Assembly: GCA_021613535.1 (NCBI GenBank)
Contig: CP075496.1
Span: 12,214,001 to 12,278,000 of the forward strand
DNA from: Adineta vaga
Lineage: Eukaryota > Animalia > Rotifera
Length of the DNA stretch: 64,000 nt
Reading direction: 5' to 3'
Under the pieces are notes generated by a model. That model was not told the DNA's origin, did not search any database, and saw only the letters and a list, made by a program, of their open reading frames with translations. The translations under genes were made by a program, and so were the position numbers. Shown here in pieces: positions 42,759 to 51,205 of this stretch (positions are counted from its first letter, which is position 1; each line of letters opens with the position of its first letter).

Positions 42759-44715
42759 TAAGCAGAGAAGCCATTTGTCAGGAAGTTCATTGTGGCATTC
42801 GATGTGTGTTGATTAACTCTATGGCCATATAAATATGAATTAATTAGGTTTTTCTGTCTAAAATGAGTGAAATATAAATGACAAATAGCAGTAAAGACTT
42901 TTTTTTGGCCTATTAAAAAGAAAAACAGCATCGAGCATTCGTTTAGTTTTCATAAAACACGAGGTACTCAATCATAAAATCACACATATTGATGAATGGG
43001 AAGTGATGGAGAAAAGCATCGTATGTAGAGTACTAGAAAAAAGATTAATACATTTGATCATGCAGAGATTCTATTTAGACTCTCAGCATTATATTTATTC
43101 AGATTATCTATAACATAACAATGGATTCGTTGATCAATTATGATTTTATCACATCTGTTACATATTGACGAAATAAAAACACATCTTTGTTCTATATCAA
43201 GAAGAAAAATCATAATCGTAATTAAACACAATCAATGAAAATTTAATGTGAATAATATTTTCTCGTTTCTTCAAATATTAATTGATCGAAGTTAATTACT
43301 CAAGAAAAACAAACATACCCTGTTCTCTTTCAATGAAATTAGAAAGAACGAAGAATTATATATCATGCAAGATGAAAATCATCTAGAAATACATAACACA
43401 TAACTATAAGATATCTAACAAAAAATATTTACATAGAAATAAATCTTGCCTGACTTATGATCATAGTTCTCTGTGTAAATATAATTGATGCGGAGAAAAA
43501 TGGAGAGAGAGAAAGAGAATTCTTTTCTATGTGTATGAATGTTTCTTGAAGATTATTTTTATTAAAGTGAATGACGAAAGCGTTCTAACATGAAATGAAG
43601 AATTAACAATGACATTTCATACTGTTTTCTATATGTAATATTGTCTTTCCGTTTTCAGTCAGCATCGATAATGGAAATTTTTGTTGAAATATTTCAGGAA
43701 AACAGCGTGAGATATTTTCAGAAAGAAGAGTACTTATATATTAGTCATGGAACATATAATATTACGTTAAGAGGGAAATGATATTTTTCTTGAAGTATTT
43801 GCTCTTTTGGAATGATTTGATTTGAAAAATAAAAGAAACAATACTTATAATTCTATTTGAGGAAAACAAGTAAATGTGAACGAAGTTAATTGAGTATAGT
43901 GTTTATTTTGAAACTAATAAATGATTAATGAAGATCATATCCATAGAAATTTAGTAGAATAAATGTTGTATTTAACGAACAAAGTTTTTTTTCGATCCAT
44001 ATTGTAATATTTACAGTATTATAGTAAGTGTATTTGATTATTTAGATAGAAACATCGAGAACATGCAATCATATCTCGTTTTAGTTCTATTGATTCTCAT
44101 ATATCACTTTGAATTACTCTAGCTAGAACGTAATTGATGTCAATGATCGTTTTGTCCTTGTAGTTTTTTCACGAATGTATTATTGAAACTCTTTGTGTTA
44201 GAGTATATGGGTGTGGGTGAATGAGTGAAGTAAAGAAGAAAGGTCCACATCTTCACTCTCACTCAAAATACATTGGACGTTTACTATCTATGTAGATTTG
44301 ATTTTGTTTTCTTGTTCAATTTGTATTTATTGTCAATAAAAAAGTATCTTTGTCTTATTTATATATTTAACTCAAAATGTTTTTTTTCTAACGAGCAACT
44401 GTCCATTTCCCATCGGAAATATGATTTCTTTCATTATACACAGATCTTTTTATCTGCTTTTGCCTTATGCATTCATGCCCGTTCGATACAATTGATTAAC
44501 TTTTTCTGAATTTCAATTAATTTCCATTGGAATAATAAATCAATCTATTATATGTATCACATGAAAATTTCAATTCAAATTCTCGAATGATTGCAATCAA
44601 ATAACCTGCGACCTCTATAATAAAATGAAATGATCGGTGTCCATGGTTGTAATGATCTTTGAAAAAAATGAGAACATATTCATTTGTCCTGTCTTCTTTG
44701 AATTTGAATAGAAGA

Positions 44716-45858
44716 ATGTTTTCTTCTAAAATCAATTCTTTTCGAACTAGTTCAATTCGTACTCTATGTAAGATAAAACTATTTCGTTAAAACTCAAATC
44801 ATTTCTATTATCACTATTTTAGTCCATTCAAATATTCCATTAGTATCTAAAAGATTCAATCATCAAATAAATACTAATGAATGTAAATAAATTTCAAATT
44901 ATTTTCAATGAAAAGTAACTTCTGTAATGTTTTATTTTAAGTTTAGTACGTCAATATTTTGAAAAAGAAATCAATGAACATAAGAAAAAGGGAGCATTAC
45001 CAACATCATTTATATTAAATGATTTGAAATATTATGAAAATCTTTCTCGTATTCGTAGTAAATCAGATCGTCTTTCATATCTTCAATCGTTAATGTCAAT
45101 TCTTAAAATACCACCATCATTTGCTATACCATATGATTCCGGTGGTATACATAGTGGATTTTTAAGTCCATATCGAAATCTTGGTCAATCGGATCTAGTC
45201 AATATGTCTGCATGGAATTATTTGAAAGCGCAACGATTAAATGATATTCTTCTTTTAAATTGTTCAAATTTATCTAGTCGTTCTTTAGCACAATTAATTC
45301 TTGATATGAGAAGCAATTTCAATTTATTAAATGAACCATGGTGGCCTAAACTAATCGGTGTGTCCGATGAGACGCATCAAGAAATCATTGACATATTAAA
45401 AACAAAACATCACTTACATGGTGTACATTTATTAACATGGGAAACGAGTAATAAAACGATAAATGAGAAAGATTTGACATTAATTTGTGCTAATCATGGT
45501 GAAACTATCTATGAATTAGATTCACACACGAATTATATTGTTCAGATTGCCGGTGATCAGAGACAATGTTGTTTAGGTGATGTTACCGATAAAAATATAC
45601 AATCTTATAAAAATATTGTTAAACTTCAATCAAGAACAAAGTAAAATAATTTTGATTTTATATGGTTTAGTTTCATTGAAAATCATTTTCTTTTGCAGAA
45701 GTTTTAATAAATCAAAACGAATTCTAACATCTGATCTATTTCAAATCCTAGGTTCATTAAAAATGAAAGATTTATTTTATAAAAAAGTTTGTAAAACAAA
45801 CGATGATGAAAATTATAATATAAAATCAAAAGTTCGTACTGGTCTAATATCACATTAG
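44716..45858 (+). CDS. TRMT10C: Divergent mitochondrial tRNA methyltransferase 10C / RNase P protein 1 (MRPP1)-like
   Basis: Mitochondrial-presequence-like MFSSKINSFRTSSIRTLF (introns 44768-44822 and 44883-44946). Blocks WNYLKAQRLNDILLLNC, LLTWE...EKDLTLICAN...ELDSHTNYIV and KRILTSDLFQILGSLK align in order with the Trm10 SPOUT domain. The 3' end is uncertain. Confidence 0.6.
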
Positions 45859-45881
45859 ATTCATTTATTTTCAGATATAAG

Positions 45882-46435
45882 ATGAGTACATTAGAAGATC
45901 TTCGATCAGTTGTGAAAGAAACATTGGAACAGAATGGATCATTAGCTGCTACACGTGCAAAACTTCGTGCAGATATTTTTACAACATTGCAAGATCCAAC
46001 GGAAGTTAAACCGCGAATTCCACATGAAAATCTTCTTATTAATGAATTGATTATCGAATATTTGAAATATAATAATTTAGATTGTGCTGCGTAAGTCCTC
46101 ATTCAAATAAGAATTTCATTATTTTGAATAATTTTCACTCTATAGATCGGTACTTGCTGCTGGTATGTTGAGAAAGAAAGAAAGAAAATTTGCATCTATT
46201 TTCATAACACGAACATTTAGAATCGGGACAACCAATACCAACACTTGGTCGAGCTTTTGTTGCTGAACAATTAAATGTTCATGATGATGAAAAAACTCGA
46301 CAATTGTAAGAAAATACAAAGAATTATTGCTTCTTATTATACTTTTGTTTTAGACCATTACTCTATTCATTATTATCACATTTTTCTGCAAATACAAAAG
46401 CAGCAAATCGTGCACTTTCAAATCGTATTAATTAA
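45882..46435 (+). CDS. FOPNL: LisH-domain centrosomal/ciliary protein FOPNL (FOR20/CEP20)
   Basis: MSTLEDLRSVVKETLEQNGSL...RAKLRADIF...PHENLLINELIIEYLKYN...SVL-AAESGQP...LPLLYSLL. 4 exons, including a 17-nt microexon at 46146-46162. Confidence 0.92.
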
Positions 46436-46712
46436 TTTCATTTTTTTCGTAATCAATCTTAATTTTTTTCTAGAATTTTTTAAAACACTTTTGTATATTG
46501 TTTGTTGTAATACTCTTATATCTAATAGAGAATCTTAATTCTACTGCCATCTATATTCATGTTATATTGGATTGGCTTCATATACTGTTTTCTAGGAGAA
46601 AGCGACAGAAAAAGAAAACAAACAAAAAAAATTTGCACTCTTGTTTTCTTCATTCTCTAGTAATCAATTACTCAATAGAATTAGAACGTAACAAAAAAAA
46701 AGATTATTTCAG

Positions 46713-49700
46713 ATGTCAGACAGTGAAGATTCTGAACAATTCAAAGTAGATGAATTGCAAAATGAACTTGAAAACCATGATCTCGATACCAAAGGACATA
46801 AAGTGGACTTAATTGATCGATTACCCGAAACGATGAATAATGATACTGAACATGACCCAAGAAAACTTCATTCGACATCTAATGACGATGAATCAGCTCC
46901 ATCTATTATAAATGATGATACATCATCTTCTTCAATTGTTTGTTGATCTGATTTTTAGAATTGTTCTCTAATATTTTCTTTATGAAATATTTAGGTTATA
47001 AAAGACAATAATGAACAAGACAAAACATCTGTTCAATCAAAGTCTCAATCAATAGAAAATTTTTCTTATGAAGAACAAAGCTCACCATCAAGTAATAAAC
47101 GTCATCTTAATGACGATAATACAGAAAAAGGAGACGACACTTTAACAGAAAAAGACGATGAAAATACGAATAATAGTGATGATATGTCAAAACAAATACG
47201 TAAAAAAAAGAGTCGTTGGAGTTCTGAACAAGATGAAGATTCACCAGACCAACAATCAACATCAAAACAAACATCAGATAATGATGATGACGATGACGAT
47301 GATAATCTGAGTAGTAGACATCCAGAACGAGATCATGATCGAGATTATCATCGATCGTCAAGACAATACGATGATGATCGACATTACAGTAGTCGACGTT
47401 CCGAAAAGTATGTAAAAGATCGAATTGATGAGGATTTCTTTTTTTCTCTTCATATGTGTATATGTACGTCTGTATGTGAGAGAGAGAGTGAGTGAGTGAG
47501 TGAATGGATGAGTGTGCGAGTACATGTGAAATGAAAGATTGGTAAACGAGAGAAAAACACTTCATCTGTCTCAAATACAAATGGCATATTAAATGAAGAT
47601 TTATGAAGAAATTTAAAAGATGTTTCATTCATTTATTACAGTATTAATTACAAGAACAATCATCTGATCATATTATGTCAAAATTTATTTATTCCAATAA
47701 TTATTATGGACTCCTGAATTATTTAACTGGTAAGCGTTGCGATAGCGAGCGATCATTATGTAATATATGGTTTAAAGATAGAAGAAAATGTAGAAGAAAA
47801 ATGAATATATATATATTTAGTTAATATACAATGGATTGTTATCCTTTTTTGTGATATATGATAATGAACAAAAGAAGATGAAGCAATGGAACAACAAAAT
47901 GAACGAAAGACAAAATATAATGAAATAAAATGATCTGAACATGGATGATGTTCTAGGTGAAAAATAATGTATATGATTGAAAATATCAAGAAATTAATTC
48001 ATTTCAGATAACAAAAAGACAGATCAATGAACAGGTTTTTCTCTAAATATCAATATCATAGAATTGATGTGTTATCTGTGTGATTCAGTTCTTTTTTTTT
48101 ATTGAATCTTTTTTATTTTAATATTTTCTTATTCTTAATTGTCTTGTTTTATATATATATAGATCAACGGAACTAGAAATAGCACTTCCAGAAGAAGAAA
48201 CAGTACAATTTAACAATGATGATGTAGTTTTAGATTTTTGTAAGTGGAACATTTTGAAATATTTGTTTAAACAAAAGTCAAAGTATAGAGAATTCTATGT
48301 CTAATCTACAGATAGATAGATATCAAACGTTTTAGCCGATACGTTTATTTGATATTTTGTATATTTCCTTTTGATTCGATAGATACATCTGATTTGAATC
48401 TGACTATAAACACGGATTGTTTGTCAGCATGCAATAAATCGAATGATGCACTCTGTTTCTTATGGGCTGGTGTTCGAGGAACATATGGATTTAAACAAGG
48501 AAAAGTTTGTTATGAAATTCGAGTAAGTATCATTTTGATGATTGTTTATCTTCATTTAATTGACTTTTTTGTTTTGCAGATAACTGAAATCGTTGATTGT
48601 CCACAAATGCCAGATAGTGAAACGGAAAAATTTGGAATTCGTATCGGATGGTCAAATCTTTCGTCTGGTGTTCACGCTCTTCAATTAGGTAAACTGACCG
48701 ATTTTGACGTTTCTTTTCATTGATAGATAATCCTATTCTACAGGTGAATTCAATGATTCATTTGCTTATACATCCATTGGAAAGATGCTCAGTATGTCAA
48801 ACAATGAAGTAACTGATGATACATATGGTGAATCATTTGGTGTGTCAGATGTTATTACAAGTTATATTGATTTTGGAGATGATGCTGAAGATAATTTAAT
48901 ACGAATATCTTTTGCAAAAAATGGTACAGACTATGGTCAAGCATTTGAAGTATCAAAAATAGATTCCAAAGAATTCTATCCGCATATATTAGTGAAAAAT
49001 GTCAAATTTGAATGTAATTTTGGACAAATGGTAAGTATTAAGATTTCACTTCTTTATATCAATGTTAATTTATCCGTTTTCTTCCTGTTAGGAAACCTCA
49101 TGGTCAGAAATCAAATCAAATTATACATTTGCACAAAATATTCCGCTATCAGATCGAATACGTAATTCTACACCAATATTAGAAAAAGATCAATGCCAAG
49201 TAATACTTCTTTCGGGTTTGAATGGATCAGGTAAAACAACTTGGGCAAAGAAATATATCGAAGAAAATGTAGACAAACATTTTAATTTACTAAATATTGA
49301 ACATGTTCTCAATAAAATGATGGTAAGTTTACAAATAAAAATATTTATTATGAATTGTTCTATTCTCTAATAGATTGATGGAAAATTACCAATGATCAAA
49401 GATCGAAATGATGGTTCAATGTTACGTGTGAATATTGCTTTACAGAAATTGATTGAAATCGCTGCACGACGTCGACGAAATTACATTATTGATCATGTAA
49501 GATCGAATAGGAATTTATTCTTATGTTTTATTTCCTTACTTTAGATGAATACAACTCGTGAAAGTCAAACAAAACAACAAAGATTATTTACTGGTTATCA
49601 TCGAATTGGCGTCGCTATTGTACCTGATGATGATGAACTGAAAAGACGTATTGAAAAACTAGAAAAAAACGAAAATATCACACTGCCATCACAATTGATT

Positions 49701-51205
49701 AGAGAAGCGAAAGCCAAATTTTCTTTTCCACAAAAAAGTTCTTCATTAGAAGATGTTCTCTATCCTGAATTATCTTATGATGATGCCAAATTATTGTATG
49801 ATAAAGCATGTCAAGATTATGAGCAGTATCGTTCATCATCACGGTATGATCGACGTGATGATTATCATTCATCACGTAATAATGATAACAATAGTTATAA
49901 TAGTAATAATAGAAATCGTTACGATGATCGAGATCGTCGAGGTCGAGAATCTGATCGAAATCGTGATCGATATGTTCGATCACGGTCACGCGAACGAGAT
50001 CGTCGAACGTCACGTGAAGATTCACGATTTTCATCGTCGTCATCATCTTCATCACATCGTAACGATAATTACCGTGGTGGTTATTCTCGTGGTGGCGGTG
50101 ATGGTGGTGGACGATATTCTGATCATCGACAAGATTCAAGAAATAATCAGCGTGGTGGTTTTCAGGAAAGTCGTGGCGGTGGTTATCGTGGACGAGGAGG
50201 AAATTATAATAATCAAACGAATGACGAACGTCGTGGTGGATATCAACCACGTAGTGATTTCGGTGGTGGACGTGGTCGCGGTGGTGGTGGCAATTTCGAT
50301 AATAATCGAGGTTCATACCATGATAGACAGCGTGGTGGATTTAGACAAGATTATGGCAATCAACAGCGTGGAAGATCGTTCAATGATTATGATAATAATC
50401 AACAACGACAACAAAGTACCGGTGGTGGCGGTGGTAGAGGCTTTATGCAGAATAATAATAACAATTTTAATCAACAACAAGATAGACAAAGATTTGATTC
50501 TCGGGTAAGTTTTCGATCAAATTAATTTTTATTAGAATAACTTTTCGGTATTTAGTCATTAATCCAGCAACAAAATTCATTTCATAATCAACAACAACGT
50601 TCAGGACCACTTCTTCAAAATCCACCATCTAATCAACAACAACAACAACCATATTCATCACATTTGATACAACAGGCATCAAATAGTCCGAATCTTTCAT
50701 TACAAACACAAAATTCATTAGGTCTGAATGCTTTGTCCAATGCTGCAAATATTACTCAACAAAATGCTCTTGATCCATGGCTTGCACTATATGCTGCTGC
50801 TCTTAATACACAACCAGCTGTTTCACAACAACAACAACAGCAACAACAACAACAACAGCAGCAACAGCAATCGCAACAAGATGCAAATTCACTAACTCAA
50901 CAATGGGCACAATGGTTAAAAACAACACAAATGGTTAGTGAAAGAATGAAATTTGAAGTATTATTATTATCAGTTGTTCTATTTTATTTTCTGTATAGGC
51001 TCAAACAGCACAACAATCTCAACCTCAATTAACAGTTCAATCAGCTGATTCTCAACAGGCACAACTTTCAGATGCAAGTGCTTTGTATTATCAAGCATAT
51101 TATGCTCAATTAGCTGCTGCACAACAACAACAACAACAAGCAGCCGCTGCTGCAGCTGGATCATATAATAGTGGTGTTGCTCCACCTGGTACTAATAATA
51201 AATAG
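46713..51205 (+). CDS. hnRNP U / hnRNP U-like (SAP, SPRY, P-loop NTPase, RGG/RS, Q-rich tail)
   Basis: SAP: FKVDELQNELENHDLDTKGHKVDLIDRL. SPRY: LWAGVRGTYGFKQGKVCYE, FYPHILVKN. P-loop: GLNGSGKTTWA, RRRRNYIID. RGG repeats and polyQ; stop TAG at 51203-51205. Confidence 0.9.
50826..50870 (+). repeat. (CAA/CAG)n polyglutamine tract in the hnRNP U-like gene
   Basis: About 15 consecutive Gln codons. Confidence 0.85.

Follow-up and report, generated by a model that had tools for sequence, protein, structure and literature searches.

Gene X and FOPNL/CEP20, two adjoining genes of the bdelloid rotifer Adineta vaga, probably form a single transcription unit that is resolved by spliced leader (SL) trans-splicing, that is, a two-gene operon with almost no intercistronic DNA. 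The gap of 23 nt between them holds a splice acceptor that has been kept in every bdelloid lineage that we examined, and we put an SL-resolved operon at slightly better than even. An operon had already been proposed in the initial annotation of the window, by which we mean the whole 64-kb stretch of A. vaga DNA analysed here. The layout of the two genes, the conserved acceptor, the SL genes of the genome and one RNA contig that bridges the pair speak for that proposal, while two of the processing routes that came with it, an in-frame fusion and a stop followed by a restart, find no support. The features of the locus are collected in Table 1.

Table 1. Features of the locus, with positions counted from the first letter of the window
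Feature	Position	Strand	Structure or size	Basis or remark
Conserved motif TGTCCATGGTTGT, candidate promoter element	44638..44652	+	~65 nt 5' of gene X start codon	
Gene X CDS	44716..45858	+	exons 44716-44767, 44823-44882, 44947-45640, 45699-45858; stop TAG 45856-58	spliced RNA contigs
Intergenic gap, gene X stop to FOPNL start	45859..45881	+	23 nt	
TTTTCAG 3' splice acceptor with pyrimidine run; proposed SL trans-splice site	45868..45874	+		conservation
FOPNL/CEP20 CDS	45882..46435	+	exons 45882-46090, 46146-46162, 46221-46305, 46354-46435; stop TAA 46433-35	RNA contig junctions
FOPNL to hnRNP U-like spacer	46436..46706	+	277 nt stop to ATG	9-locus bdelloid alignment
TTTCAG acceptor directly 5' of hnRNP U-like ATG	46707..46712	+		invariant in 11 loci
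hnRNP U-like first coding exon (SAP domain)	46713..46937	+	gene runs on to ~50525	

Checking the sequence returned exactly the coordinates first given for the upstream TAG (45856-45858) and for the FOPNL ATG (45882-45884), on the same (+) strand. We compared this arrangement with 14 other bdelloid loci (15 in all, about 11 of them distinct) from A. ricciae, R. sordida, R. magnacalcarata and about eight metagenomic bdelloid lineages. The gene order X, FOPNL, hnRNP U-like is kept in 14 of the 14, the third gene being scored where the contig reaches it. The stop-to-start gap takes values of 19, 23, 25, 26, 35, 38, 41, 46 or 49 nt, and the acceptor AG follows the gene X stop at 12-42 nt. Every gap closes with a pyrimidine run, TTTCAG and then AT, and this TTTCAG followed by AT is invariant in 15 of 15 loci. 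The distance from the acceptor AG to the FOPNL ATG is 7 nt (8 in one locus), and the rest of the gap differs in both length and sequence.

Conservation of the gap in other rotifers had been suggested as a check, and the check, which gave our strongest line of evidence, came out in favour of the proposal, with short gap and acceptor both kept in the 14 other bdelloid loci. Two claims first made from A. vaga alone are likewise borne out. The space is too tight for a promoter plus a poly(A) region, at 23 nt here and 19-49 nt in the orthologous loci, and the TTTTCAG has the marks of a true, selected 3' splice site, since it is invariant and stays 7 nt from the ATG in about 11 lineages despite the varying gap. 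The + strand of the window holds 32 copies of TTTCAG, which gives about a 1% chance of one in a given 23-nt gap; the main support for the acceptor comes from its invariance across all orthologous gaps and not from its presence in one of them. An acceptor precedes the ATG in 6 of 75 ORFs of the window against a background of 3.7%, too crude a measure to use. The surroundings of the gene X stop hold no canonical AATAAA.

Of the relatives of gene X, the most distant is that of Didymodactylos carnosus (36% identity), which is part of a gene model fused with a sphingomyelinase-like (mit_SMPDase-like) gene, and no FOPNL lies near it within the 13-kb locus. The linkage of gene X and FOPNL is thus apparently not universal in bdelloids. 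It may be younger than the bdelloids, or the D. carnosus copy may be a paralog. Tight packing has produced fused gene models in two other rotifers, joining gene X to FOPNL in R. magnacalcarata and the mit_SMPDase-like gene to the gene X relative in D. carnosus.

We then turn to RNA, for which Logan contigs of four public runs were placed on positions 44200-47250. The contigs of all four runs are spliced and are hence derived from RNA. The initial annotation had pointed to a second AG directly before the FOPNL ATG (45880-81) and to the donor hexamers GTTTGT (45787) and GTTCGT (45832) within gene X, from which it derived the stop-restart and in-frame fusion routes. All of these are present in A. 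vaga, but the second AG is missing from every other lineage compared and neither hexamer is conserved among the bdelloid loci. The RNA contigs of the four runs hold no cis junction into 45875 or 45882. With the second AG and the donors unconserved, the fusion and stop-restart routes lose their support.

The same observations bear on two rival explanations of the locus. One is that the acceptor at 45874 serves in cis, an upstream non-coding or shared exon (gene X exon 1, for example) being spliced to 45875 with no SL involved. A conserved acceptor is by itself silent on its donor, and donor-like hexamers do exist; yet all six ordinary introns are seen in the four runs while the junctions just mentioned are not, the proposed donors are not conserved, and splicing from the coding exons of gene X would put an upstream ORF before the FOPNL start. 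We consider cis use improbable. The other is a chimeric gene X-FOPNL protein, produced by splicing out the stop codon together with the gap, as annotated for an R. magnacalcarata model on a 2-kb contig. Read from the A. vaga sequence, GT 45842 and AG 45896-97 would give an in-frame intron of 56 nt. No such junction appears in the RNA contigs, however, the alternative AG at 45880-81 is private to A. vaga, the GGT codon supplying the donor is GGA in two lineages, and other R. magnacalcarata contigs annotate a separate FOPNL of 130 aa, so that a chimera can be all but dismissed.

A transcript spanning both ORFs had also been predicted. One contig of run X5 (record 19, 1667 nt) extends from 44710 to 46713, lacks all six introns and is uninterrupted over 45699-46090, so that the gene X stop, the gap and the FOPNL start lie on one path of RNA sequence. 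This contig, which flanks the gap with 160 nt on one side and 209 nt on the other, fits the prediction, and against it the three other runs show no bridge; a de Bruijn contig over two genes is moreover an assembled path and does not imply a single molecule. In runs X1, X15 and X17 contig coverage of gene X breaks off at 45750/51 and that of FOPNL sets in again at 45929, and recomputed depth bins leave 45751-45928 free of any contig although the flanking genes are covered. This hole may reflect the erosion of dead-end paths at transcript ends combined with allelic bubbles, or a filter.

One explanation for the contig that crosses the gap unspliced in run X5 is a mature bicistronic mRNA, in which FOPNL would be translated by re-initiation or leaky scanning 23 nt past the gene X stop and the TTTCAG would go unused. 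Such an mRNA leaves unexplained why, in a gap that otherwise varies in length and sequence, TTTCAG followed by AT is constant and keeps its distance from the ATG, and it fits poorly with the separate contigs of the two genes in three runs. We regard it as very improbable.

The operon reading predicts an SL joined to FOPNL at the acceptor. Neither an SL-joined contig nor a loose SL end was found at 45875 in the four runs, Logan contigs being unable to show RNA ends. Logan assembly probably clips short tips such as SL-joined ends would form. Two contigs begin at an AG that precedes a start codon: record 6 of X1 at AG 46711, ahead of the hnRNP U-like gene, and the X5 contig at AG 44710, ahead of gene X. 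A branch of the assembly graph at these two positions fits SL joining, as the SL also ends in AG, and is suggestive only.

The machinery for such joining is at hand. SL trans-splicing in bdelloid rotifers has been known since 2005, and the 23-nt bdelloid SL sequence is given in Table 1 of PMC3795323. We searched the A. vaga assembly (100.8 Mb, 6 contigs) and found the SL exon 42 times; every copy departs from the published SL by a single mismatch, at base 1, and each is followed by a GT donor, which reads GTAAAT in the copy inspected. The appeal to bdelloid SL trans-splicing in the initial annotation is therefore well founded, on these copies and on the literature (PMC3795323, PMC1925144). The SL RNA genes mostly stand in divergent (head-to-head) pairs about 155 nt apart, for example at C1:2551160-2551336 and at about 15 other places, many of them in clusters on contig C5. 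An Rfam search with one SL gene locus returned nothing relevant.

The main rival to an operon is a promoter inside gene X. Here the two genes would be separate, overlapping units: FOPNL would start from its own promoter within gene X, its short outron would be removed by the SL at the same acceptor, and gene X would end independently. The conserved acceptor and the SL machinery fit this arrangement equally well, as do gene X and FOPNL contigs that stay unjoined in three of the four runs. Identity at third codon positions rises slightly from exon 2 of gene X (about 0.85) to its last exon (0.87-0.97), which could reflect overlapping signals, but the rise is small and comes from related sequences. 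We looked for a conserved block in gene X intron 3 that could act as an internal promoter and found none, only the splice sites being conserved, and no conserved non-coding block lies 5' of FOPNL. The long-kept gap of 19-49 nt further suggests that the two genes cannot be separated. Taken together, these observations make an internal promoter unlikely, though it keeps a real share of our belief.

A candidate for a shared promoter lies instead 5' of gene X. The motif TGTCCATGGTTGT is common to the upstream regions of A. vaga, A. ricciae and R. sordida, and the RNA contigs start shortly after it, at about 44693-44710. We propose it, from its position and conservation, as a candidate promoter element of the unit. 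Neither this motif nor the spacer motif of the hnRNP U-like gene is enriched in the window as a general promoter element.

Gene X itself proved to be different from what had been annotated. Its start had been placed at 44668, whereas RNA contigs and orthologs beginning MFSSK or MLFSK put the start codon at 44716. RNA contigs also show that an intron at 45641-45698 (GT..AG) precedes the last coding exon, 45699-45858. Orthologs of 316-318 aa are found in A. ricciae, A. steineri, several Rotaria species and metagenomic bdelloids. The deposited A. vaga model I4U23_021076 (235 aa; 45024-45858) starts at an internal Met and is truncated; RNA contigs and orthologs both support about 80 further residues at the N-terminus. 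Two alternative acceptors of gene X stand only 5 nt from each other, 44947 being used in three runs and 44942 in one; the minor acceptor 44942 shifts the frame into an early stop.

The label TRMT10C, under which gene X was first described, had to be given up. Spliced gene models were searched exon by exon. Neither the A. vaga exons nor the full-length orthologs have a Pfam match up to E=10, and a PDB profile search gave nothing. A six-frame search of the whole A. vaga genome with PF01746 matches at 7 other places and not at the gene X locus, and the gene X profile, aligned by hhalign to the TRM10 domain that A. vaga does have, reaches a probability of 0.08%. In an exhaustive profile search of 1.8 billion proteins, gene X has kin only in bdelloids. 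A TRM10/TRMT10C methyltransferase (PF01746, SPOUT domain) finds no support in these searches, and with no TRM10 signal in Pfam, PDB or profiles we take gene X to be a bdelloid-restricted protein of unknown function.

Three further observations concern the protein. A short part of the gene X profile is matched six times over by a 590-aa record from an assembly of Acipenser sinensis; the record carries the flag UNVERIFIED_CONTAM and is probably contaminating or repetitive DNA. The AF2 model of gene X, built from 13 sequences, has a pLDDT of 46.6 and is unreliable. An ADP-ribosyltransferase lead (ESM Atlas, 0.91) was weak, with few shared features, and was not adopted.

The identity of the downstream gene is clear. 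FOPNL orthologs, 127-130 aa long, have the PF09398 (FOP_dimer) domain and are listed in UniRef as Centrosomal protein 20, and they match exon 1 at 86-94% identity, exon 1 alone being sub-threshold in Pfam. Exon 1 is single-copy, and no second FOPNL copy (ohnolog) was found in the A. vaga genome. A word search for RNA-derived FOPNL contigs from other rotifers returned only genomic sequences or annotated proteins. The second coding exon of FOPNL is a microexon of 17 nt, seen in the RNA contigs of all four runs.

Whether the unit extends to the hnRNP U-like gene, as had been suggested, is doubtful. This gene has an hnRNP U/SAF-A-like architecture, with a SAP domain (E=4e-8), SPRY (E=8e-7) and a weak AAA_33 in downstream exons, and an RGG-rich tail ORF at 49545-50525; RNA contigs place its first intron at 46938-46994/5 (junction 46937 to 46995/6). 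The TTTCAG before its ATG is indeed invariant, but the spacer of 277 nt carries conserved promoter-like blocks. Invariant in nine lineages are TTCTACTGCCATCTAT (46539-54), GATTGG, a reverse CCAAT box (46570-75), GCACTCTTGTTTTCTTCATTC (46635-55) and AATAGAATT (46674-82), and the spacer also holds an invariant ACAAACAAA run. These blocks could be the gene's own promoter, 3'-end elements of FOPNL, or both.

No conserved cis donor is present in the 9-locus alignment of the spacer and no junction falls there in the RNA contigs, so the TTTCAG of the hnRNP U-like gene is most simply a trans-splice site. RNA does cross the spacer: record 12 of X15 joins FOPNL to the hnRNP U-like gene, and record 19 of X5 reaches its ATG. 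A FOPNL 3'UTR that overlaps a short outron would yield the same contigs. We lean against a third member, at about two to one, and hold membership of the hnRNP U-like gene in the unit to be the minority case.

For gene X and FOPNL, the operon reading leads to the following scheme. Transcription would begin in the conserved region 5' of gene X (about 44640-44700) and run from this presumed shared promoter through both genes. The FOPNL mRNA would receive its 5' end from the 23-nt SL, trans-spliced to AG 45873-74 and joined at 45875, where the exon after the acceptor would begin; this would give FOPNL a native 5'UTR of 7 nt. The 3' end of the gene X mRNA would have to fall in the 16 nt that separate its stop from the acceptor, or at the border of that stretch. 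Because the branch point and the acceptor would overlap the gene X 3' end, one primary transcript probably yields either the gene X mRNA or the FOPNL mRNA, and not both.

It is conceivable that the pair is one instance of something wider. We hypothesize, tentatively, that bdelloids have near-gapless SL operons of the Ciona kind throughout their genomes. Gene X and FOPNL would then have stayed joined since at least the split of Adineta and Rotaria for want of a separate FOPNL promoter, and the upstream 3' end, formed with no canonical poly(A) signal, would compete or be coupled with trans-splicing 12-42 nt after the stop.

We found no report of rotifer operons in the literature searched. A methods paper of 2021 states that operons are not reported in rotifers, and a paper of 2025 lists rotifers loosely, with no data, among the lineages with trans-splicing and operonic transcription. 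That rotifers do have operons is made more credible by a pair that is conserved, nearly gapless and equipped with a selected acceptor, and this touches on the question of a joint evolution of operons and SL trans-splicing. How one precursor gives two mRNAs could be studied in compact form at this locus, where the 3' end of gene X and the FOPNL acceptor would overlap within about 16 nt. For annotation, tightly packed pairs of this kind cause fused or truncated gene models, three of which were seen here.

For comparison with known systems, the closest parallel is Ciona intestinalis, where operons that lack intercistronic DNA are resolved by the SL (Satou et al. 2006, PMC1488885). Operons of Ciona and Oikopleura have from 0 to 23-30 nt of intercistronic DNA and receive the same SL as monocistronic genes, and for the Ciona operons without intercistronic DNA processing has been proposed to be mutually exclusive in each molecule (PMC1488885). 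As in Ciona, the A. vaga pair consists of unrelated same-strand genes placed side by side with the presumed downstream trans-splice acceptor at the boundary, one SL would serve monocistronic and operon genes, and mutually exclusive processing is predicted. The A. vaga pair differs in belonging to the phylum Rotifera and in being known from layout and conservation, not from a mapped SL junction or poly(A) site. In bdelloids the acceptor AG follows the upstream stop by 12-42 nt, so there would also be room for a short 3'UTR, unlike in Ciona.

We know of no SL2-like second leader in bdelloids. Standard SL2 operons of C. elegans have an intercistronic region of about 100 nt with a U-rich element. 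The FOPNL to hnRNP U-like spacer resembles these in having a conserved U-rich block some 60 nt ahead of its acceptor, but it differs in also having the reverse CCAAT box and the other promoter-like blocks, and so the hnRNP U-like gene may simply combine its own promoter with SL trans-splicing.

Two other systems come near to the gene X-FOPNL boundary. Oikopleura dioica likewise has a compact, AT-rich genome, and the intercistronic regions of 23-30 nt cited for it in PMC1488885 are close to the bdelloid 19-49 nt, although the bdelloid figures run from stop to start and not from poly(A) site to acceptor. In SL1-type operons of C. elegans, cited in that paper as having no intercistronic sequence and being resolved by SL1, the acceptor also adjoins the upstream 3' end and the leader is the general SL and not an operon-specific one; the C. 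elegans examples have AATAAA in the upstream cistron, a signal that the gene X stop does not have nearby. By analogy, then, the layout of gene X and FOPNL matches that of operons in Ciona (0 nt), in Oikopleura (23-30 nt) and of the SL1 type in C. elegans.
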